64,000 nucleotides of DNA from Rebecca billardiae RCC1528 (lineage: Eukaryota > Protista > Haptophyta), in NCBI GenBank assembly GCA_965240325.2, contig OZ251235.1, positions 62,001-126,000 of the forward strand, in the 5' to 3' direction. The notes beneath the pieces were generated by a model that was given only the letters and a program-made list of their open reading frames with translations, had not been told where the DNA came from and did not search any database. Shown here in pieces: positions 20,911-62,120 of this stretch. Position numbers and translations under genes: made by a program. How positions within the stretch are numbered: the first letter of the stretch is position 1; the number at the start of each line of letters is the position of its first letter.

Positions 20911-21339
20911 TCAGCGCGATGGCGTCTCCGCCGTGTTTGCATTGCCGTCAGCCCCTGGCGCCAATTGCCGCTTCCGCGCCCACTCATGCCGAAACTCGCC
21001 CTTCGAGTCGAAGAGCACCTGGTTCATACGCTGCTCGCGCTCGGCTCGGTCCTCCTTGTTGCCGTAGCCGTGCTTCATGCCCGAGGACGCCGCTTTGGCG
21101 CGGGCCCACGTCGGTGTCTCCATCAGCTCTTCCTTGGTCATCTCCGTCTTTCCGCCGATGATTGCAAAGACGATGGCTGCCGGCACGATCATCAGGCCGG
21201 TGTAGATCAGGACAGGTCGGGAGCGGAACAATGCCTGACGCAGCGGCAGCGATGGAGGGCCGGTGTCGGCACCGGCCGCAGCCGGCTTGGGCCGAGCTGT
21301 CGAAGGAGGTCGACGATTCGTGCGAAGTCGCGGGTCCAT
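20911..21339 (-). CDS. Small single-pass membrane protein of unknown function
   Basis: Protein-like composition, unlike the shadow ORFs. One TM (VLIYTGLMIVPAAIVFAIIGG) and a charged C-terminus. Confidence 0.6.
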   Translation of the reverse strand: MDPRLRTNRRPPSTARPKPAAAGADTGPPSLPLRQALFRSRPVLIYTGLMIVPAAIVFAIIGGKTEMTKEELMETPTWARAKAASSGMKHGYGNKEDRAEREQRMNQVLFDSKGEFRHEWARKRQLAPGADGNANTAETPSR

Positions 21340-21726
21340 CGTGATTCTGTGGATGGCAGATTTTATTTCTTGCGCTTGATGCAAGGAGGGTTATTTGTGA
21401 GCTGCTGATGAAACCGTCGTCTACGTACCGTCTTTTATTTTAGTCGCGACCGTAGTCGTTCCGCGTTCGTTTTGGTAACTGGCCCGGCCCGCCGTTGTAC
21501 TCTTGTCTGGTTCATATCAAGCAGCGTGAAACGGTACAGTATACCGTACCCCTAATGATGATAGCAGCCGAGATCAAGCGGCTGATGACGAGACACCATC
21601 AAGATTTCGGCTGCTTGGGCCTTGGCTCTTTGCAAAGCTGCTCCTTGGTGAGGGCGGCGGTGGCCACGCCAAGGGCCCCGGGGAGGGCCTGCGCGATCTC
21701 TGGCCGGCCGCGTCACGGCGCCCCCA

Positions 21727-24700
21727 ATGGGGGGCCGGGGCCATGGCCAGACTCCCCGCTTCCTAGGCGCCAACTTCGGCTCGCCGCCGCAGGTTGCGCC
21801 GAATGGCGGCGATCGGTGTTCGCCGCTGCCGCCATCGCAGCCGGGCGCATCACCGCACAACAGCCGGCGCGCACCACGGGCGAGCAACCTGCTCTTCTCT
21901 CGCGCCCGGGCGCACGACACGCGGCTTGTGATCGTGAGCGATCCTGGGCCGGACCCGGATGACGTCAAGGTGCGCGCTGTTGCCTGACGCGCGGCGATGC
22001 TGCGACGCGCCTCGCGCGCGGTGCGAACTGTGTGCTGCGTCGCAGCTCGGGCACGGCGGCGCCACGGGGCGCGGGCGCGCACCGCCTGGCACGGCACGGC
22101 TGCGCGCTGAGCTTGCATGCGCGCCCATCCTCCCGCGCGCGCAGGCCATCCTCGTCGCCGCCATCCTGCACAAGCAGGACCAGCTCGCGCTCAACGCCGT
22201 GATCGCAAACGGAGGCGGACAGGCGCGAGCGCGCGCGCGGCTCGCGCGGTGCATCCTGGACCACGTGGGCGCGCGCGACGTGCCCGTGGGCGTGGGCTCG
22301 GGCGGGCGGGACTACTCCGCCCAGCCGCACGAGTACAACATCGCCGGCTACCAGGAGGTCGAGGACAGCCGGCTGGTGGACGGGCGGGTGCTGCTGATGT
22401 CGATGCTCAAGCAGGTGCACACACGCGCGCGCGCGCACGCGCGCTGGGCGCGGGGCGCGGAGCGCGGGGCGTGGGGCGTAGGCCATGGGGCGTGGGATGC
22501 GGCGCGCCCGCGCACGGGGCGCTTGCGGCGTGCACGCGGCGTGCACGCGACGCGGTGCTCGCGCGCTGTGGTGCGCACGGGCAGCGCCGGCGCGCCGCCC
22601 GTCCTGCAGCTCTGGGGGAGGGCCGATCCGAGGGGGTCAAGGCCCGCCTCGCTCCTCGCCCTCGTGAGCAGCACGGCACAGGGGCGCAGGGGCGCGTGGC
22701 GCGAAGCGGCGCGCTCGACTGCTCGCTCACCGCTCTGGCCTGCGCGTACGTGCGCGCGCGCGCGCCGCCCGCCCGCAGGCCTCGCTGCGCTCGCTCACCT
22801 TTGTCTGTATCTCGTCGCTGCGAGATCTGGCGGACGCGATGCTGGCGGAGCCCGAGCTGGTCGTGTCCAAGGTCCGGGAGGTCGCGGTGATGGGCGGGCT
22901 GGAGCAGGACTCGGCGAGCGGCGAGTGGCTGCCGGACACGTCGGTGAACAACGGTGCGTGCGCGCCGTGGCGGGGGCGGGCCGGGGCCTCGCCTCCGCTC
23001 ACGCGCGCGCGCCCCGCCTCCGTGCGCCGCGCGCAGGCCTGGACGCCGAGGCGGCGCGCACCGTGTACGCCTTCTGCTTCCAGCGCGGCGTGCCGCTGCG
23101 GGTGGTCAGCCGCTTTGCGGTGCCGATGCTGCCGATGCAGGTGCGGTGGGCCCCGCGCGGCTGCGCGCCTCGCGCGACTGCGCGCCTCGCGTGGCGCACG
23201 GCCCACGCCGCACTCGCCCTGACGGCGCCTCACGCCGCGCGTGTGCGCGCCCGCGCGCCGCGCCGCGCCGCTCTCACGCTCGCGCACGCAGCTGGCCAAG
23301 TCGTTCGCCGACCGCACCAACTGCCCGGTGATGGCGTACCTGGCGAACGCGCAGTTCCTCGGGCTCGAGGGCCTCTGGCAGAAGCTGTGCGAGGGCAAGC
23401 TGCCCGCGCGCTGCACCAAGCAGTGGTACTTCGAGACCTTCTGCGGCGTGGACGCAGACCAGTTTGGCGCCAAGGGCCTCGAGGCGCTCGACGCCTCGGC
23501 GGACATCGTCACGCTGCTCAATGGCTTCGTCAAGCCGTACGACGGTGCGAGCGCGCGCCAGCGGCGGCGGCGCGCGCGCGCGCGCGCGCCGGCGGCGGCA
23601 GCGCCGGCGCTCACACCGCGCCCTCGCGCGCCCTCGCGCGCGCGCGCCGCGTTTGCGCCGCGCCCGCCGGTCTGCGGGCGCCTGGCTCGGGCAGTGGTGG
23701 CCCTGATGGCGGTGCTGCCGCTCACACGGCTCTGCTTCCCGCCCGCGCTCGAGGTCGAGCGCGGCGGCGCGACGCACCTGCTGTACGTGCTCGCCGAGCA
23801 CGCGCCCGACGTGTGGCACGTCCTCAAGCTGCTGCGCGAGACCTACCACGAGGTGGTGATTGCGACGAGCGGGCACGGAGAGGAGGGCACGGCCTCGCTC
23901 GCCGCCTCGAGGCTGCGCGGCGGGCTCACCAGCTCGCAGTGGGCGCCAAAGTCGCCCAAGGGCGGCGGTGCCCCGAGCTCGGCGCGCGAGCTGGCGCGCA
24001 GCTCGCTCCACCGCAGCACCGACCTCTTCGGCGGCGGCTCGCGCCGCTCGTCCGACTCGTCCGTGCGCGACAGCCACGCGGTCGAGCCGATGTCGCCCGC
24101 GGGCGCGCGCGCCTTCCCGGCCGTGCGCGCCAAGGCGGGCGGCGAGCCGATGGGCCAGTACGACGTGGTCGTGCTGCTGCGCCACGCGCTCGACGAGGCG
24201 TCGCGCCGGCAGCGCGCGTCCGCGCAGCCCATCGTGCTCTGCGGCATGGCGCTCGTCGCGGCGTGCGTGCTCGTCTCGATCATCGACGCGCTGATCCACC
24301 CGCGCGCCGACCGCTCGCGTGACGAGGACGCGGCGGTGCGCATGCGGCAGGGCGCGTACAAGGCGGCCGCGTCGCTCTCGACGATCTGCATGCTGCTCGG
24401 CGTGCAGCCCTTCTCCGCGCAGCGACGCACGCACCTGCTCGTCGCGCTCTTCGCCATGTGCTTCTTCGCCGCGCTCGCGCTCATCAAGTGGCTCGGCCTG
24501 CTGGTCGGGATCGGCGGCGGCTGGTTCAAGACGCGCACGGCCGCGGGCGCGGAGGCGGTGCTCGTGCTCACCGCGCTCCAGTCGGCGCTGCCCATCGCCA
24601 TCCTGGGCTGGGCGGTGGTGCGCCACCTGCGTCAGTCGCGCTGGATCCTGATCGCCACGTGGCACTCGTGCGGCGTGCTCGCGCTCTGCGCCGGCGCGCT

Positions 24701-25225
24701 CGACGTGACGCTCGCCGTCGACGAGTGCGTGCACGAAGGCTGCGGCGCGCACCCGGGCTTTGTCGCGCCGATGCTCGTGCTCGGCGCGTGGAACGTGGCG
24801 ATGGGCTTCCTGCTGCTGCACCCGCGGCTGCGGCTGAAGGGGCACGCGTGGCTCTCGCGCGCGCTCTCGACCAGCGGCCGCTACTCGCCGCTCGCGCCGT
24901 TGATAGGCTTCGGCCAGACCGACCCCAACCCCGAGCAGATTGTGGAGCGCGCGTGGCGGATGTGCAACCCCGTCACGCTCGACGGCGGCGCGTTCCGCCG
25001 CCTCTCCTTCTCGCCCACGCCCGTCGGCACCGGGCTGCAGAGCGGCCGCGCGCGGCCGCTCAACGGCAGCCCGCAGCACACGAGCCCGCACGGGGCGCGG
25101 CTGTCCGGCCCCGCCGTCGTCGTCGAGCGCGCCGAGCTCTCGGGCGCCGACTCTGACACGTGCTCCGTGCCCGAGCGCAGGCACTCGGTCGAGCTGGGCG
25201 GGTACCAGCTCGCAGTGCCGCCCTT

Positions 25226-25279
<54 letters not shown>

Positions 25280-26144
25280 GAACTCGCAGAGTAGCGGCGG
25301 CTCGCGCTCGCCCATCCGCGCCGCCATGCAGCGCATCAGCGCGGACATGCTCGGCCGCCGCCCCGCCTCGGAGTGCGGGCTCGCGCGCGGCACGTCCGGC
25401 AGCTCGGCCGCACCCAGCAGCGTCGAGGGCAACAGCGGGCGCAACATCGACCGCGCCGCGCCGCTGCCCGAGGAGGACGAGGACGAGGACATCGACTTTT
25501 ACATCGTGCACTCGTGGCGGGACGAGCCGTCGGCCAAGCGCGGCGCGCTCGTGCACTGGGTGCGCGCGTTCGCCGCGGAGCACGGCCGCTCGCCCGTCGT
25601 GTGGCTCGACGCGCTCTGCGTGGACGCGCAGACGCGCGCGGCCGAGGCGCCGGGCGAGCAGCTCGCGCACCTGCCCGTCCGCCTCGCGCGCGCCAGCCAG
25701 CTGCTCGTGCTCCTCGGCCCGACGGTGGTCGACCGGCTCTGGTGCGTCGCCGAGCTGTACGTCTGGCGCGCGATGGGCGGCCAGATGGAGGACGTCGTCG
25801 TGCTGCCGATCGGCGCGCCCGGCGACTCGCGCGCGACCGCGTCGGTGATTGCCTCCGTCGACGCCTTCCACGTGATGCACTGCGCCGCGACGCGCGAGGA
25901 GGACTCGCTGCGCATCGTGCACGCCGTCGAGCTCGCGGGCGTGTCGCGCGTGAACGACGTGATCCGCGCCTTTTTGCCCGCCGTGCGCGCCGCGTGCGCC
26001 CAGATGGAGAACGGCGGCACGCCCAACGTGGGCTCGCCGGGCAGGTTGGTCAGCAGCGACAGCGGCGAGAACGCGGGGCCGCCGCTCGTCGACCCGGCAC
26101 GCTCGGCGGAGGAGGGCCGCGCGGGAAGCGCGGCGGCGAGCTGA
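21727..26144 (+). CDS. Nucleoside-hydrolase-like / 6TM / TIR-like fusion protein, copy A (exons 21727-21969, 22145-22414, 22779-22953, 23037-23140, 23292-23544, 23695-26144)
   Basis: The spliced product has IVSDPGPDPDDVK, VPVGVG, ISSLRD, VAVMGG, SVNNGLD and KPYD (IU-NH-like), then about 6 hydrophobic helices, then DFYIVHSW..VWLDALC..LLVLLGP...RLWCVAEL (TIR-like). All five introns are GT-AG and phase-compatible. Confidence 0.85.
25227..25280 (+). repeat. (GGC)n coding repeat, about 18 Gly
   Basis: Directly visible in the linker before the TIR-like domain. Confidence 0.95.
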
Positions 26145-26868: not shown

Positions 26869-29646
26869 TCAGGGGAAGCTCAGCTTGTGCGAGGCGCTGA
26901 GGCCGAGCTCGCGGATGAGGTCGTCGCGCGCGCGCGCCGCCTCCTCGGCCGTCTCGTACATCTTGGTGCGGTGGCGCGCGCCTGCGTGGTACAGCATGCC
27001 GCACCACGGCCTGTTGCGCGGCTTGTCCAGCTTCACCTGGACGCCCGCGAACGGGATGACCGGCGGCTTGCGAGCCTCTGCGCCTGCGCGAGAGGCCTTG
27101 ACCACCTCGCTGCGGCGGCGCTGCTTGAACCAGTTGAAGATGCGCCCCTCGCGCAGGCCGAGCTTCTTGGCGAGCAGGGCGCGCGCGTCCGCCGTCGGGT
27201 ACGGCTGCCGGTGGAAGGAGCGGACCAGCGTCGAGAGCTGCTTCGAGGACAGCTTGTTGCCGCGCGGCGGTTGGTCGTCATCCTCGAGCTCGCCCGCGTC
27301 CTCGCCCGGCTCACTGTCCTCTGCCGCGGACTGCCCCGCGCCCACGGAGGGCTCCTCCTCGTGGTCCTCCTCGTCGTCGTCGTCCTCGTCGTCGTCGTCG
27401 TCGTCGTCCTCGTCGTCCTCCTCATCCTCCTCGCTGTCCGCGCTGTGCGCCGCCTCCGCGCCGAGCTCCTCCTCGCCCTCCTCCGGGAAGTTGAGCGCGC
27501 GCTCGCCCACCAGCCCGAGCTGGCGCACGAGGGCGTCACGCGCGCGCGCTGCCTCCAGCGCGGTGGCGAAGGCCGCGGTGGTGTGCCGGCGGCCGCGGAC
27601 GGTGATCTGGCCGCGCCACGGCTTGGGCCTCCCGCGGGACTTGTCGCACTGCAGGCCGACCAGCTGGGTCGGTGCGGCCGGGGAGGGCGCTTCGGACGGT
27701 GGCGCGCTCGGAGTGACGCTCGGCTCCGGAGGGTGCGCGCGGCCTGCGTGCGCTGCGGCGCACTGCGCGCGCGCATCGCCCTCGGCAGCGCCCGTGGCGC
27801 GGCGCGTGCGCTGGCGGGGCGGCGCCTCGCTCGGCACGTCGTCGTCCGAGCCGGCATCCTCGTCACTGAGGTCGTCGAGCATGTCCACGTCCCCATCGCC
27901 GCCCGCGTCTGCCTCCTTGGCCGCAGCGTCGGCGCGCGACGACGAGCCTGGCGCGCGCGCGGTGCGCATGCGCTTGGCGGCAGGGCGCTGCCGCGCGGAC
28001 ACGTCGGCGTGCGCCGAGCTGTCTGCCGCAGGCTCGCGCGCATCGGGCTCGGCGGCACCGCTCGCCCCGACGCCGCCCGGCATCTCGCCGTCGCCGCCCT
28101 CCGCCTCCGCGCCCGAGTCCGGCGAGTCCGGGAAGTTGAGGCCCTTCTGAGCAACGATGCCGAGCGAGCGCACGATCTCGTCGCGCGCCTGGGCCGCCTC
28201 CACGGCCGTCGCGAAGAACGCCGTGTTGTGGCAGCGCTTCTGGTGCCACACGCTGCCGCGGAAAGGCCTGGTGCGGGCTTTCCCCGAGGTGTCACGGTGC
28301 ACGCCGACGAACTCCGCCTCCGCGCCCGAGTCCGGCGAGTCCGGGAAGTTGAGGCCCTTCTCAGCAACGATGCCGAGCGAGCGCACGATCTCGTCGCGCG
28401 CCTGGGCCGCCTCCACGGCCGTCGCGAAGAACGCCGTGTTGTGGGAGCGCTTCTGGTGCCACACGCTGCCGCGGAAAGGCCTGGTGCGGGCTTTCCCCGA
28501 GGTGTCACGGTGCACGCCGACGAACGGGGCGCCAGGCTGCCGCGCCGCCGGCGGTGACTGCGTCTCCAGGCCCGCGCCCACGCCGGGCGCCTCGCCGCGC
28601 ACGTGGGCGCCCGCGCCGAGCTCGCCACTGGCGCCGTGCGCGGCGCTCGGCTCCTCAGCCGGCGCATCGCCGCTCGTGGCGGCAGGACCGTCCGCGGCGC
28701 GCGCACCCGCGCCACTGCCGCCCTCGTGCGCGCCCGCGAGCGGCTGTGCGGCGGGCGTGACAATCGTCTCCGCCGGCTCCTCCGCAGCGGCGCCATCGCC
28801 CGCGGAGTGCAGCGCTGCTGGCGCCGAGTGCTGCTCATGCTGCGCGCCGCCGGGCTCGTCCGGCCGCGGGAAGTTGAGCGGCTTGGCGTGCTCGAGCCGA
28901 AGCTTGCGCACCACGTCGTCCACGGCGCGTGCCGCCTCCTCGTCCGTGCCGAAGCGCGTCGTGAAGTGCGACTTGCCCTTGACGGTCACGCAGCCGCGCC
29001 ACGGCTTGCCCTTGATCTTCTCCGTCCGCTCGCAGTGCACGTTGACGAAGCTCGTGGTCGGCCTGGGCTCGCTCGCGTGGGCGTCCTCCATCCGCTGCGC
29101 CGCCGCCAGGTCCGCGGCCAACTCCTCGTCGTCCTCCGCCTCCTCAGCGCCCTCCTCGTGGCTGAAGACCAGATCAGTCTGAGTGCATGCGTCCACGCGC
29201 GGCCGACGCCGATGCGAGTTGGGCACGTGGCGGGCGTCGGCGACGTCGAGGAGGTGTCGGCCGGGAGGCGCGGCGCCGGACCCCGCCCGCCCGTCGGCGG
29301 GCGCGCCGCGCGCGCTCGGCTCGCTCGAGGAGGTCGGCAGCGCGTCGCTCGGATCGCGCCGCTTGTGCAGCCGCACACTCGCCATCGTCTGGGGCTGCGG
29401 CTCGTGCTCGGCGCTCAGGTCCAGCGTGAGACGCAGCCGGCACTCGTCGCCACCTTGCGCGGCCTCGGGCAAGCGCGCGGCGATCAAGCCGAACAGCGGG
29501 TGCGTGAGCATGAGGTCGTCGCCGCCCTTCCGGCCGAGCGGGACTTGGAAACGGTACTCGCGCGTCTCGTGCGCGGGCGCGGCAGGCGGTGTCGTGAGCG
29601 CGTCCTGCTCGCGCGGCGTCGCAGCGCTGTCGTCAAAGTGCGCCAT
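26869..29646 (-). CDS. Transcription factor with five AP2/ERF-like domains and one homeodomain
   Basis: Five F(V/A)GV...P(W/F)RG....F.T..EAA.A.D....L(N/S)FP-type units. Homeodomain LSSKQLSTLVRSFHRQPYP...LAKKLGL....IFNWFKQRR lies between AP2 #4 and #5. An acidic tract is present. Confidence 0.85.
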   Translation of the reverse strand: MAHFDDSAATPREQDALTTPPAAPAHETREYRFQVPLGRKGGDDLMLTHPLFGLIAARLPEAAQGGDECRLRLTLDLSAEHEPQPQTMASVRLHKRRDPSDALPTSSSEPSARGAPADGRAGSGAAPPGRHLLDVADARHVPNSHRRRPRVDACTQTDLVFSHEEGAEEAEDDEELAADLAAAQRMEDAHASEPRPTTSFVNVHCERTEKIKGKPWRGCVTVKGKSHFTTRFGTDEEAARAVDDVVRKLRLEHAKPLNFPRPDEPGGAQHEQHSAPAALHSAGDGAAAEEPAETIVTPAAQPLAGAHEGGSGAGARAADGPAATSGDAPAEEPSAAHGASGELGAGAHVRGEAPGVGAGLETQSPPAARQPGAPFVGVHRDTSGKARTRPFRGSVWHQKRSHNTAFFATAVEAAQARDEIVRSLGIVAEKGLNFPDSPDSGAEAEFVGVHRDTSGKARTRPFRGSVWHQKRCHNTAFFATAVEAAQARDEIVRSLGIVAQKGLNFPDSPDSGAEAEGGDGEMPGGVGASGAAEPDAREPAADSSAHADVSARQRPAAKRMRTARAPGSSSRADAAAKEADAGGDGDVDMLDDLSDEDAGSDDDVPSEAPPRQRTRRATGAAEGDARAQCAAAHAGRAHPPEPSVTPSAPPSEAPSPAAPTQLVGLQCDKSRGRPKPWRGQITVRGRRHTTAAFATALEAARARDALVRQLGLVGERALNFPEEGEEELGAEAAHSADSEEDEEDDEDDDDDDDEDDDDEEDHEEEPSVGAGQSAAEDSEPGEDAGELEDDDQPPRGNKLSSKQLSTLVRSFHRQPYPTADARALLAKKLGLREGRIFNWFKQRRRSEVVKASRAGAEARKPPVIPFAGVQVKLDKPRNRPWCGMLYHAGARHRTKMYETAEEAARARDDLIRELGLSASHKLSFP
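28099..28524. repeat. In-frame tandem duplication, 2 x 213 bp (one AP2 domain each)
   Basis: 28099-28311 and 28312-28524 are identical by eye except for two substitutions. Confidence 0.95.
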
Positions 29647-29907
29647 CGGGGCACGTCGATCTGGGCGCGCCGTCGCGTTTCGCCGCGGGTGAACGCGGGA
29701 GAGGCGGGCCTGCGCGAGTGGGCCGGCGGCGGCCTTTGCTGCTTGGCGCGCACTCGCCAGCGCCGGCGCGGCGCGCGCACGTGCGGGAGTCGCGGGCTCG
29801 CCGCTCGCGAGCGGCTGCCGCGTTTTCTCGTCCGGAAACACTGCTGTGGTCTCAGGGTCCGGGGTTCCAGCTGCGGGCGCGCGGGGGCGCTCAGGAGAGG
29901 ACTCATC

Positions 29908-31128
29908 ATGGACGGCCCGCCGCCGCCCGCCCAAGCGCACGCTGCGGGCCTCCTCGAGAGCCTGCACGACGACGACCTGGAGGTGGTTCTGCTCCGAACG
30001 GACACGCCAAGTCTCGCGCGTCTCGCGAGCACGTGCACCAAGCTCCGCGCCATGCTGGCCGAGCCCTCCCTGCTCCGGCGACTCGTGCATGTGCGTGGCT
30101 TTTCGCCGGGGCGCGCGCCGGCTGATGCAGACGAGGACACGGCCGCTGGGCGGGCGCCACACTTTCACTTGAGCGCGGATGTGGTGGATTCACTCGAGGG
30201 CCTCGCCATCCTGGAGGCCCTGCGCGCCGAGCCCCTGGGGGGCAGCCACCTCGTGTTCCATCTCGCTTCCTTGTCCATGGTGAGCGAGTCAAAGGAACTC
30301 CTCAGCCGCTACGCCGAGCTGCTCCGGCGGCACCCGCGGCTCACGGTGCGTATCGACTCGCACACGGGCGTGGGCGCGCCCTCGCGTATCCACGCCTCCC
30401 ACAGCGTGCGTCGCGCCGTCGTCGCCGCCCGCGCCCTCGCCGCGCATGACGTCTCGATGGAGCGCATCTCCGCATGCGCGTGGGGGTACCGCGTGGCTCG
30501 TCAGCATGACTGGCCGCCCACGACGAAGTACGCGCGTTGCGAGCTCTTCCTCACCCTGCCCGCCGCACGCAACGCGCTGGGCCCCGTCGTCGCGCCCACG
30601 CCCGTGGCGACGACCGCGCCCGCCGTCGCGCCGGAGGCTTCGGAGCCGGAGGCGGGGCCGCAGCCGCAGCGGCCGCAGTTTGACCGGTCGCGCTGCGCGC
30701 CCTCGTGGCCCCCTTACTACGAGGGCGTGACCCCGACGAAGGACCTGTGGACCGTGTGCGAGGAGGCTGACAGCGAGGACGACCTCGCTGGCGTGGAGAG
30801 CGACTACAGCAGCGACGACGAGCCGGGGCCGGGCGGCCACTTCATCAACCCCATCCTGCACCACCTGCACGGGCTGTTTGGTGGGGCCAACGGCCCTCAG
30901 CTGAATGGCGTCCCCATCGGGATCCACGACTTTGTGGCGCTCCTCCAGCAGCAGCACGGGGCTGGGGTCGTCCCTGGCATCGCAGGCTTCCCCGCGGATT
31001 CGGATAATGACGAGGACAGCAACCCCGCCTCCGACGGCGGCGGCGGCAGTGACGATGATGACCAGGACTACCAGCCCACCAGCCCTCACCACAGCCCGGA
31101 TGGCGGGCATGGCGATCACTCGCAGTGA
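29908..31128 (+). CDS. F-box-like plus OmpA/MotB C-terminal-like domain protein
   Basis: LESLHDDDLEVVL...SLARLASTCTKLR is F-box-like. VFHLAS...LLRRHPRLTVRIDSHTG...SVRRAVVAARAL...VSMERISACAWG...RCELF is OmpA_C-like. Confidence 0.65.
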   Translation: MDGPPPPAQAHAAGLLESLHDDDLEVVLLRTDTPSLARLASTCTKLRAMLAEPSLLRRLVHVRGFSPGRAPADADEDTAAGRAPHFHLSADVVDSLEGLAILEALRAEPLGGSHLVFHLASLSMVSESKELLSRYAELLRRHPRLTVRIDSHTGVGAPSRIHASHSVRRAVVAARALAAHDVSMERISACAWGYRVARQHDWPPTTKYARCELFLTLPAARNALGPVVAPTPVATTAPAVAPEASEPEAGPQPQRPQFDRSRCAPSWPPYYEGVTPTKDLWTVCEEADSEDDLAGVESDYSSDDEPGPGGHFINPILHHLHGLFGGANGPQLNGVPIGIHDFVALLQQQHGAGVVPGIAGFPADSDNDEDSNPASDGGGGSDDDDQDYQPTSPHHSPDGGHGDHSQ

Positions 31129-61009: not shown

Positions 61010-62120
61010 GGCGCCACTCCCCGCCCACGGCGCCCCCGATGTTACCTCGGTCTCGGGGCGCTCTCCAAGCGTATTTACTCTCTGGACCCCCATACTGTAT
61101 TATTGTTGTGATAGGCGTGCTTCAGGTTTTGTCTCCCACGAGACAGCTCACCATCTGACATGCAACTAGAGGAGATATGTAACAGCTGTATGTGGTTGCC
61201 AGTATGGGTAATATGCGAACCCTTTCAGTGTTCTTTTGTATCATACATTCTCAAGCACCCACGCGGCAAAGCGTCTTTTAACGGCATGATGATAAATCTA
61301 CTACTACTAGTAGTAGTACATAGAAAACTGTGCGTGTAACGGACTGATGGAAACGGCAGGCTGTATGAGTCGGAAATATGCATGTATAGGGATGTATCAT
61401 AGTGAAAAATGTGAAAACTACCGTCACACACACACGCAGACTTTTGTCCACGTGGTGTGCTGCTGCCAGGGAGTCCTCGTTGGCCAGCAGCGAGCACTGC
61501 GAATGCACCGATGCTCATTCAGTCTTTGGCTGCCCGCCAAGTTTCCGCTTATCGCCGCGCGGCGCGGAGCGGCAGAAGCAGCGTGCGGGGGCAGGCCGCG
61601 GGCCGGGCCGTCGTCAGAGCGGTGAGCTTCCAGCTTACACAGACAGTCGGGCCCAATAGCCTCGGCGGGTGTCCTCAATTGCTTCGGAGACGGGTTATGC
61701 GCGTGTGACTGCCGGCTTGCTGTGCGGAGCCACCACGAAGAAACTGATTCAGACCTGGCACGGGAGGCAGTGACTTCAGCAGCGGCACCGTGACCACCAT
61801 CGTCATCATCATCGAGCGGTCGGTTGCATGGCAACTTACCCGGCGTCCCAGCCAACGGCGACCAACCGGCACGCCATGGACTCATCGATCTCCCCGCGTG
61901 GTCAAGCGCAACTCCGCCATCCGGGCTGGGCGACTTGGGCGCCTGGGCCGCTGTTGGGCGGGCCGCGGGCGCCATTTCTCGCGCTCATTATTCCTTGCTC
62001 ACTTCTTGCCGCGCGCGCACTCAAGTTCAGGTCTTCAGGACGACTGGGCTGCGCGGTGGGCTCGCCCTGCTCCCGGCTGGCCCGGTGGCGCCCTGACGAG
62101 GCACTGTCTTCGTCACCATC

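Follow-up and report, generated by a model that had tools for sequence, protein, structure and literature searches.

A predicted nucleoside hydrolase-membrane-TIR fusion protein from a pavlovophyte gene family

A six-exon gene and its product

The window analysed here is a 64,000-nucleotide stretch of contig OZ251235.1 from the haptophyte Rebecca billardiae RCC1528 (positions 62,001 to 126,000 of the forward strand). Our subject is a plus-strand gene at 21727-26144 of this window, whose predicted product of 1164 amino acids joins a domain of nucleoside-hydrolase fold, a six-helix membrane module and a TIR domain in one chain. The base composition of the window varies from GC 0.55 to 0.80, and open frames are present in all six frames. 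Three-frame translation of 21400-23800 yields nucleoside-hydrolase-like pieces that jump from frame to frame, with each jump bordered by GTGC[GA] at its left and CAG at its right. When the six exons are joined, a frame of 3495 nt results (1164 codons and a stop) that contains neither frameshifts nor internal stops. The gene and the parts of its product are laid out as follows.

21727..21969, plus strand: exon 1, with the putative start, a low-complexity N-terminus, the first strand of the hydrolase fold and the DXXXDXDD motif
21970..22144, plus strand: intron 1, 175 nt, GTGCGC...CAG, phase 0, lacking codon periodicity
22145..22414, plus strand: exon 2, hydrolase residues 82-171
22415..22778, plus strand: intron 2, 364 nt, GTGCAC...CAG, phase 0
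22779..22953, plus strand: exon 3, hydrolase residues 172-230, with the MGG and NN motifs (NN codons at 22947-22952)
22954..23036, plus strand: intron 3, 83 nt, GTGCGT...CAG, phase 1
23037..23140, plus strand: exon 4, hydrolase residues 230-264
23141..23291, plus strand: intron 4, 151 nt, GTGCGG...CAG, phase 0
23292..23544, plus strand: exon 5, hydrolase residues 265-349, with L289, L292, W309, F314 and D348 (23541-23543)
23545..23694, plus strand: intron 5, 150 nt, GTGCGA...CAG, phase 1, in frame and free of stops
23695..26144, plus strand: exon 6 including the stop codon, continuous coding sequence for the C-terminal part of the hydrolase, the membrane module, the linker and the TIR domain
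24150..24866, plus strand: membrane module, residues 501-739, six long helices (AlphaFold2 and hydropathy)
25227..25280, plus strand: poly-Gly run of 18 residues in the disordered linker from the membrane module to the TIR domain
25488..26009, plus strand: TIR-fold domain, residues 947-1120 (AlphaFold2, VIA-align and family profile)

An earlier sequence-only reading of this DNA had proposed five introns and a hydrolase split across frames, and the splice sites of the form GTGC[GA]...CAG, the codon periodicity and the gap-free junctions all bear this out. In the exons, GC at codon positions 1, 2 and 3 is 0.72, 0.53 and 0.96; the five introns are flat, at 0.74-0.93 at every position. Exon 6 has a third-position GC content (GC3) of 0.95-1.0 in each 300-nt slice. 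The periodicity together with the GC3 of exon 6 argues that the long open reading frame (ORF) is coding sequence, and not one of the frames that stay open by chance where GC is high. Intron 5 is hidden within the long ORF at 23241-26144 because it is in frame and without a stop. At its position all homologues read KPYDV[VL]ALM with no insertion, and its GC content is 0.86-0.90 at all three positions. Alignment of the spliced hydrolase region with 13 homologues, complete transcript ORFs among them, shows zero indels at the five junctions, and the homologue P0025 aligns as one high-scoring segment pair spanning residues 53-1145 of the 1164-residue protein. The least certain element of the gene model is the start codon. 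The putative start at 21727 is the first ATG downstream of an in-frame stop, and it is uncertain because the GC3 of exon 1 is only 0.79 and homologues have shorter N-termini.

All the motifs listed in the sequence-only reading, which had described one polypeptide carrying the hydrolase, transmembrane helices, a poly-Gly linker and the TIR domain, are found in the joined frame. Exon 6, with its uniform coding signal, encodes the final third of the hydrolase fold and all that follows it (membrane part, linker and TIR domain), so the fusion is independent of any splice. Proteins annotated in Diacronema lutheri and in Pavlovales sp. CCMP2436 have their parts in the same order, and complete MMETSP transcript ORFs, one of them assigned to Pavlova gyrans, likewise carry hydrolase, membrane module and TIR domain together. 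Among the 34 membrane-TIR database proteins whose N-terminal sequence can be judged, 29 contain the hydrolase domain or its last-exon remnant. The first residues of many database entries coincide with the start of the hydrolase part encoded by the last exon, as expected of ORF-style gene calling on intron-containing contigs. Considering these data together, we regard a single fusion protein with hydrolase, membrane module and TIR domain as very probable.

Public gene models of family members are often wrong: P0001 (Diacronema lutheri KFE25_000057) and P0007 leave out the exons for the middle of the hydrolase, and P0015 and P0029, among others, are also faulty. Domain-architecture surveys built on such models would therefore miss the fusion.

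Three parts of the predicted protein

The hydrolase-fold domain extends over about residues 64-410, with the motifs DPGPDPDD at 72-79 (21940-21963), MGG at 209-211, NNGLD at 228-232 and PYD at 346-348. The first of these, D72-P-G-P-D76-P-D78-D79, has the form DXXXDXDD and aligns with TDPNKDPDD of XopQ. It is this form that marks the HopQ1-like clan, as against the DXDXXXDD of the classical enzymes (PMC11685791), and the canonical DXDXXXDD motif does not occur in this protein. Separate exons match the family models weakly because they are short. Exon 3 alone reaches E 0.0012 with Pfam IU_nuc_hydro (19 bits, against a gathering score of 34.2), while the NCBIfam XopQ model is matched at E 2.6e-5 by exon 3, 0.023 by exon 4 and 7.7e-6 by exon 5, XopQ being the only NCBIfam model among the close scores. 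Against the XopQ equivalog NF041355 the exon pieces score 13-25 bits, far below its cut-off of 500 bits. Judged by these scores, the protein is a distant relative of XopQ and not a XopQ orthologue.

Relatives of the gene place the domain more closely. Exon 1 of a paralogue matches Pfam IU_nuc_hydro at 5e-10 (40 bits, cut-off 34.2), and full-length homologues score 27-56 bits with the same model (n = 7), six of the seven lying at 34-56 bits. The spliced hydrolase region aligns with the homologue P0062 at 449 bits. P0062 in turn matches the XopQ structures 4kl0 and 4p5f at E 9e-26 over ~310 residues, compared with 0.007 for the canonical Leishmania major nucleoside hydrolase 1ezr; the paralogue exon gives 1e-6 to XopQ versus 0.99 to the canonical hydrolase. 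The nearest solved structures are those of XopQ (4kl0, 4p5f, 7jlu). What had been called a domain like the inosine-uridine nucleoside hydrolases (IU-NH) thus holds as a matter of fold, which Pfam IU_nuc_hydro recognises in the paralogue and homologues, but it is not a canonical IU-NH, given the DXXXDXDD motif and XopQ as the nearest relative. By motif and profile, the N-terminal domain belongs to the HopQ1/XopQ-like clan.

Residues were paired with those of XopQ from the alignment, with an offset of 81 between chain index and XopQ numbering. D72, D76, D78 and D79 correspond to XopQ D116, D120, D122 and D123, N228 and N229 to N280 and N281, and D348 to D399; every aspartate of the calcium and catalytic site is present in this copy. 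A 2026 preprint reports that XopQ hydrolyses 2' cyclic ADP-ribose (2'cADPR), that this cleavage is abolished in the inactive mutants D120N and D120N/D399N, and that XopQ and HopQ1 are inactive on ordinary nucleosides (bioRxiv 10.64898/2026.06.15.732069). The contacts of XopQ with ADP-ribose (ADPR), as quoted in PMC11185476, are Tyr279, Leu342, Leu345, Trp361 and Phe366. Four of the five are kept here, as L289, L292, W309 and F314, and Tyr279 is replaced by Val227. The DXXXDXDD motif, with XopQ as the nearest solved relative, makes cleavage of an ADP-ribose-type nucleotide likelier than cleavage of ordinary nucleosides.

The membrane module was modelled by AlphaFold2 on a 50-sequence alignment (pLDDT 88.9, pTM 0.84). 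As the sequence-only reading had anticipated with its about six transmembrane helices, an even number, the model contains six long helices, at residues 501-549, 557-584, 589-623, 631-658, 663-696 and 702-739. Short conserved helices follow helix six, around a LAPLxGFG motif. Hydropathy alone gives four to six segments depending on the member, and an iterated profile finds the module in 92 of the 151 proteins recovered via the TIR domain. The even number of helices implies that both protein ends lie on one side of the membrane. No signal peptide is present in the homologues, which begin just 5-30 residues ahead of the hydrolase fold, and Lys and Arg residues number 14 on the proposed cytosolic side versus 7 on the other. 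From the helix count, the lack of a signal peptide and the Lys/Arg bias, we infer that the hydrolase and the TIR domain both face the cytosol. The predicted poly-Gly linker is confirmed as a run of 18 residues.

The only nearly invariant position of the module is proline 587, between helices 2 and 3. An exhaustive VIA-align search with the module gave a best Z of 9.3 with partial coverage, below the level that is meaningful for helical bundles. An ion channel or transporter was considered as well, and this assignment is unsupported by either search (Foldseek E 0.13; VIA Z 9.3).

The C-terminal domain contains FYIVHSW, VVWLD, LLVLLG and RLWCVAEL within residues 950-1036. Glu1035 (25752-25754) lies in WCxxEL, which we take to be the motif holding the catalytic glutamate of plant TIRs, and is the sixth residue of helix alpha-C after strand C, a register that rests on the profile alignment and the motif. 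With this domain, a single-sequence search of the PDB returned nothing, and the PADLOC models gave no match at E up to 1. A 67-sequence family profile searched against the PDB has TIR domains as its top three matches (TLR15, and SIGIRR twice; E 0.012-0.043). The profile alignment pairs the first strand and sets LLvLaGp...rlWCvvEL against the receptor vLfvlSPsFvnScWCqyEL. When the 67 homologous domains are compared with Pfam individually, TIR_2 is matched by 17 (best 4.9e-7), HET by 13, TIR by 3 and ThsB_TIR by 3. The Pfam matches that had been forecast were therefore obtained in part: IU_nuc_hydro appears in the paralogue and homologues, and TIR_2 in 17 of the 67 homologous domains but not in this copy.

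Structural comparison points the same way. The AlphaFold2 model (pLDDT 92.3) has the strand-helix order of a TIR domain, and the top Foldseek rows are nearly all TIR domains. On re-alignment with VIA-align, the best 50 of 50 PDB entries are TIR domains, with Z 8.4-11.3 over 126-155 residues; plant RPP1, RUN1 and SNC1 rank first, followed by MyD88, AbTir, SARM1, SPARTA and ThsB. These results, with Glu1035 in WCxxEL, uphold the proposal of a C-terminal TIR domain with a glutamate at the catalytic position. The glutamate is kept in 52 of the 67 aligned domains, and in 150 of 177 in a wider set. TIR domains with this glutamate cleave NAD+ to ADPR, cyclic ADPR isomers and related nucleotides. A HET domain was also considered, because the motifs are similar to those of fungal HET and 13 of the 67 domains score weakly for it, but TIR_2 scores are stronger and commoner and all structural matches are TIR, so that HET is a distant relative at most.

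The family in pavlovophytes and hydrolase relatives in bacteria

A word-indexed search with exon 6 returned a single match. An exhaustive HMMER search of 1.84 billion cluster representatives returned 1831 relatives, 1055 of them at E<=1e-10. All members with a named organism are Pavlovophyceae (Diacronema lutheri, Pavlovales sp. CCMP2436 and Pavlova gyrans), and the remainder come from metagenomes or public read assemblies. No database protein is more than ~65-72% identical to the proteins of the window's genes. Its sequence relatives show that the fusion is no one-off: it belongs to a large gene family of pavlovophytes.

In 24 full-length members we checked eight hydrolase residues and the TIR glutamate. 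Both sites are intact in 17, this gene included. The hydrolase is intact and the TIR glutamate lost in 4, the hydrolase is degenerate and the glutamate intact in 2 (one 90%-identity cluster), and both are lost in 1. That both sites have been kept in most members speaks for two working enzymes. Members that depart from this are reminiscent of the degenerate partners in other writer-eraser families. An example with a degenerate hydrolase is found in the window itself, where a second hydrolase-membrane-TIR gene lies on the minus strand at about 60906-56070, with at least 2 exons and ~45% identity in the hydrolase domain. Its motif reads C-A-G-P-D-P-D-A and its PYD has become AYQ, so that Cys, Ala and Gln stand in place of three aspartates; the TIR glutamate is kept (KLHALIEV).

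One further member, P0005 (ENA assembly, 1110 aa), contains two module-plus-TIR units in tandem: a module at 1-283, a TIR domain at 307-461, a module at 476-778 and a second TIR stretch.

No relative was found in viral contigs. In bacterial genomes only stand-alone hydrolase relatives were found, with no TIR domain or membrane module alongside. These carry ITDPGRDQDD, are ~30% identical and come from Candidatus Obscuribacterales and one Uhrbacteria genome. A NUDIX gene immediately precedes the hydrolase gene in 9 of the 14 loci, and 6 loci have a second IU_nuc_hydro gene beside it; none of the 14 has a TIR gene or membrane module nearby. The bacterial loci include L001 (3812-7098), L003, L004, L007-L010, L012 and L014. 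NUDIX enzymes commonly act on ADP-ribose, and their presence here lends weak, indirect support to an ADPR-type substrate in the HopQ1-like clan. The NUDIX-hydrolase neighbourhood may be an ADP-ribose-related gene cluster.

Two further genes flank the fusion gene in the window. A 157-aa ORF at 20911-21384, on the minus strand and divergent from the gene, encodes one hydrophobic segment and a Lys/Glu-rich tail. The gap between them (21385-21726) is less GC-rich, has stops in all frames and is probably a promoter region shared by both. On the other side, a long minus-strand ORF at 26869-30168 is convergent with the gene at its 3' end; this ORF encodes repeats of an AP2-like unit together with a segment resembling a homeodomain.

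Interpretation and comparison with known systems

The explanation that best fits these observations is a 1164-aa multi-pass membrane protein in which the TIR domain would cleave NAD+ and the XopQ-like domain would hydrolyse the product or a close relative of it; from the sequence comparisons, we put its probability at roughly 0.5. That both domains would act on NAD-derived nucleotides is, taken separately, an evenly balanced proposition. Activation would probably come about by clustering of the protein in the membrane, on which other TIR enzymes depend. At the cytosolic face of the membrane the TIR domain would then convert NAD+ to an ADP-ribose-type nucleotide, for example a cyclic ADPR isomer, and the tethered XopQ-like domain would hydrolyse this product or a close relative. 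Such hydrolysis might set a threshold, end the signal or convert it to the next molecule. The narrower version of this scheme, in which a cyclic ADPR-type messenger from the TIR domain is degraded by the XopQ-like domain of the same chain, acting as an inbuilt off switch or threshold, so that maker and breaker of one and the same molecule are joined, we hold only tentatively and think somewhat unlikely. The most likely role, by analogy, would be in defence or stress signalling in the pavlovophyte alga.

Several observations weigh against this explanation. On the hydrolase side, the domain is only about 25-30% identical to XopQ, and the replacement of Tyr279 by Val227 means that the substrate may differ. 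On the TIR side, Pfam, NCBIfam and PADLOC find no TIR, HET or defence match in the C-terminal domain or exon 6 of this copy, Foldseek reaches E 1.5e-3 at best, and the fit to solved TIRs is moderate, with a root-mean-square deviation of about 3.8 A. A Foldseek comparison of the membrane module with solved structures gives a best E of 0.13 and no convincing relative. The 4 of 24 members with an intact hydrolase that have lost the TIR glutamate imply a hydrolase that is independent of a catalytic TIR in its own chain. Finally, the suggested part in immunity is drawn by analogy with plants and bacteria, and no viral or defence context was found with the PADLOC models or among viral contigs.

A different division of labour, which we consider rather unlikely, is that the XopQ-like domain binds an ADP-ribose-type nucleotide made elsewhere, and that binding activates NAD+ depletion by the TIR domain or opens the membrane module, leading to growth arrest or death of the infected cell. 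SARM1 and the Thoeris effectors would be its parallels. The conserved ligand-contact residues are consistent with such a sensor, as is the membrane-TIR unit being the conserved core, and the second copy in the window, which has lost three catalytic aspartates and kept the fold and the TIR glutamate, fits a domain that only binds. However, a pure sensor has no need of the full catalytic set of the hydrolase, which is present in this copy and in 21 of the 24 full-length members, and neither Foldseek nor VIA-align recognises an effector-like fold in the membrane module.

There is a small chance that the TIR domain instead serves as an adaptor between proteins, like the TIR domains of animal Toll-like receptor signalling, and that the hydrolase has an unrelated metabolic or binding role. 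Indeed, the top PDB matches of the family profile are animal receptor TIRs (TLR15 and SIGIRR), and the family domain lies between Pfam TIR_2 and HET. The WCxxEL glutamate is nevertheless conserved in 85% of the family domains, the best structural matches are enzymatic plant TIRs, and adaptor partners are not known in haptophytes. Equally improbable, in our estimate, is a housekeeping enzyme, anchored in the membrane, for nucleoside or NAD salvage with no part in signalling or defence. Pfam does assign the fold to IU_nuc_hydro, and the NUDIX gene and second hydrolase gene that adjoin the bacterial relatives could form a salvage cluster. Against this, the motif is the non-canonical DXXXDXDD, the preprint finds XopQ and HopQ1 inactive on ordinary nucleosides, and a large, fast-diverging, TIR-fused family is not expected of a salvage enzyme. 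That the protein is an artefact of annotation, put together from a pseudogene or from two adjacent genes, as an uncertain start codon and the ease with which open frames arise at 75% GC might suggest, is very improbable given one uninterrupted exon that holds the hydrolase end, membrane module and TIR domain at GC3 0.95-1.0, identical part order in complete transcripts of relatives, and the absence of frameshifts and internal stops.

The proposed coupling of NAD+ cleavage to hydrolysis of an ADPR-type product would bear on a longer-standing question. For two decades XopQ had no known substrate; the 2026 preprint then reported that it destroys 2'cADPR, a signal made by TIR domains. A XopQ-type and a TIR domain in one chain, with both sites conserved in most members, lend evolutionary support of an independent kind to the view that the two enzyme classes are functionally linked. 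The family could also serve as a natural system in which to study the switching-off of a TIR signal from within, the possible use of cADPR-type immune nucleotides by algae outside the green lineage and the origin of the bacterial effectors. Were the TIR and XopQ-like domains to make and break one messenger, haptophytes would use the TIR nucleotide chemistry of plant and bacterial immunity, and the XopQ/HopQ1 effectors would be weaponised versions of older endogenous signal-terminating enzymes.

The sequence-only reading knew of no characterised protein with this architecture, and our literature search, with most subscription journals outside it, likewise found no description of a nucleoside hydrolase-TIR fusion and none of TIR signalling in haptophytes. 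An algal HopQ1-like clade that includes haptophytes has been described (PMC6019455). TIR or membrane fusions are mentioned neither there nor in the preprint on the HopQ1-like clan (bioRxiv 10.64898/2026.06.15.732069). Both domain families are known; their combination and the membrane module appear to be new.

Among known systems, XopQ and HopQ1, type III effectors of Xanthomonas and Pseudomonas syringae, have in common with the algal protein the nucleoside-hydrolase fold, the DXXXDXDD calcium motif, the equivalents of D116, D120, D122, D123 and D399, and four of the five ADPR contacts. They differ in sequence (~25-30% identity) and in having Tyr279 where the algal protein has Val. The algal gene is eukaryotic and intron-containing; the hydrolase domain that it encodes is not a secreted effector and, unlike XopQ and HopQ1, continues into a membrane module and a TIR domain. 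With the canonical IU-NH enzymes (PF01156; Leishmania major 1ezr, Escherichia coli RihA) the fold and the aspartate-bound calcium site are shared, but these have the DXDXXXDD motif and are much less similar (E 0.007 versus 9e-26 for XopQ). The enzymatic TIRs (RPP1, RUN1, SNC1, SARM1, AbTir, ThsB and SPARTA) have the same flavodoxin-like fold and order of strands and helices, with Z<=11.3 over ~150 residues, and share with the algal domain the WCxxEL glutamate at the start of alpha-C. They differ in sequence (9-16% identity), in that this copy has no Pfam TIR match and some of its relatives score weakly as HET, and in their partners, which are NB-ARC/LRR, ARM/SAM or Argonaute where the algal TIR is attached to a six-helix module. 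Finally, bacterial GGDEF-EAL proteins, the nearest parallel to the proposed scheme, join a cyclase for c-di-GMP to its phosphodiesterase, and many of them have one degenerate site, as do some members here. Their likeness to the algal protein is one of analogy only, that of a maker and a breaker in one chain: the folds are unrelated, the nucleotide is different and no homology is claimed.

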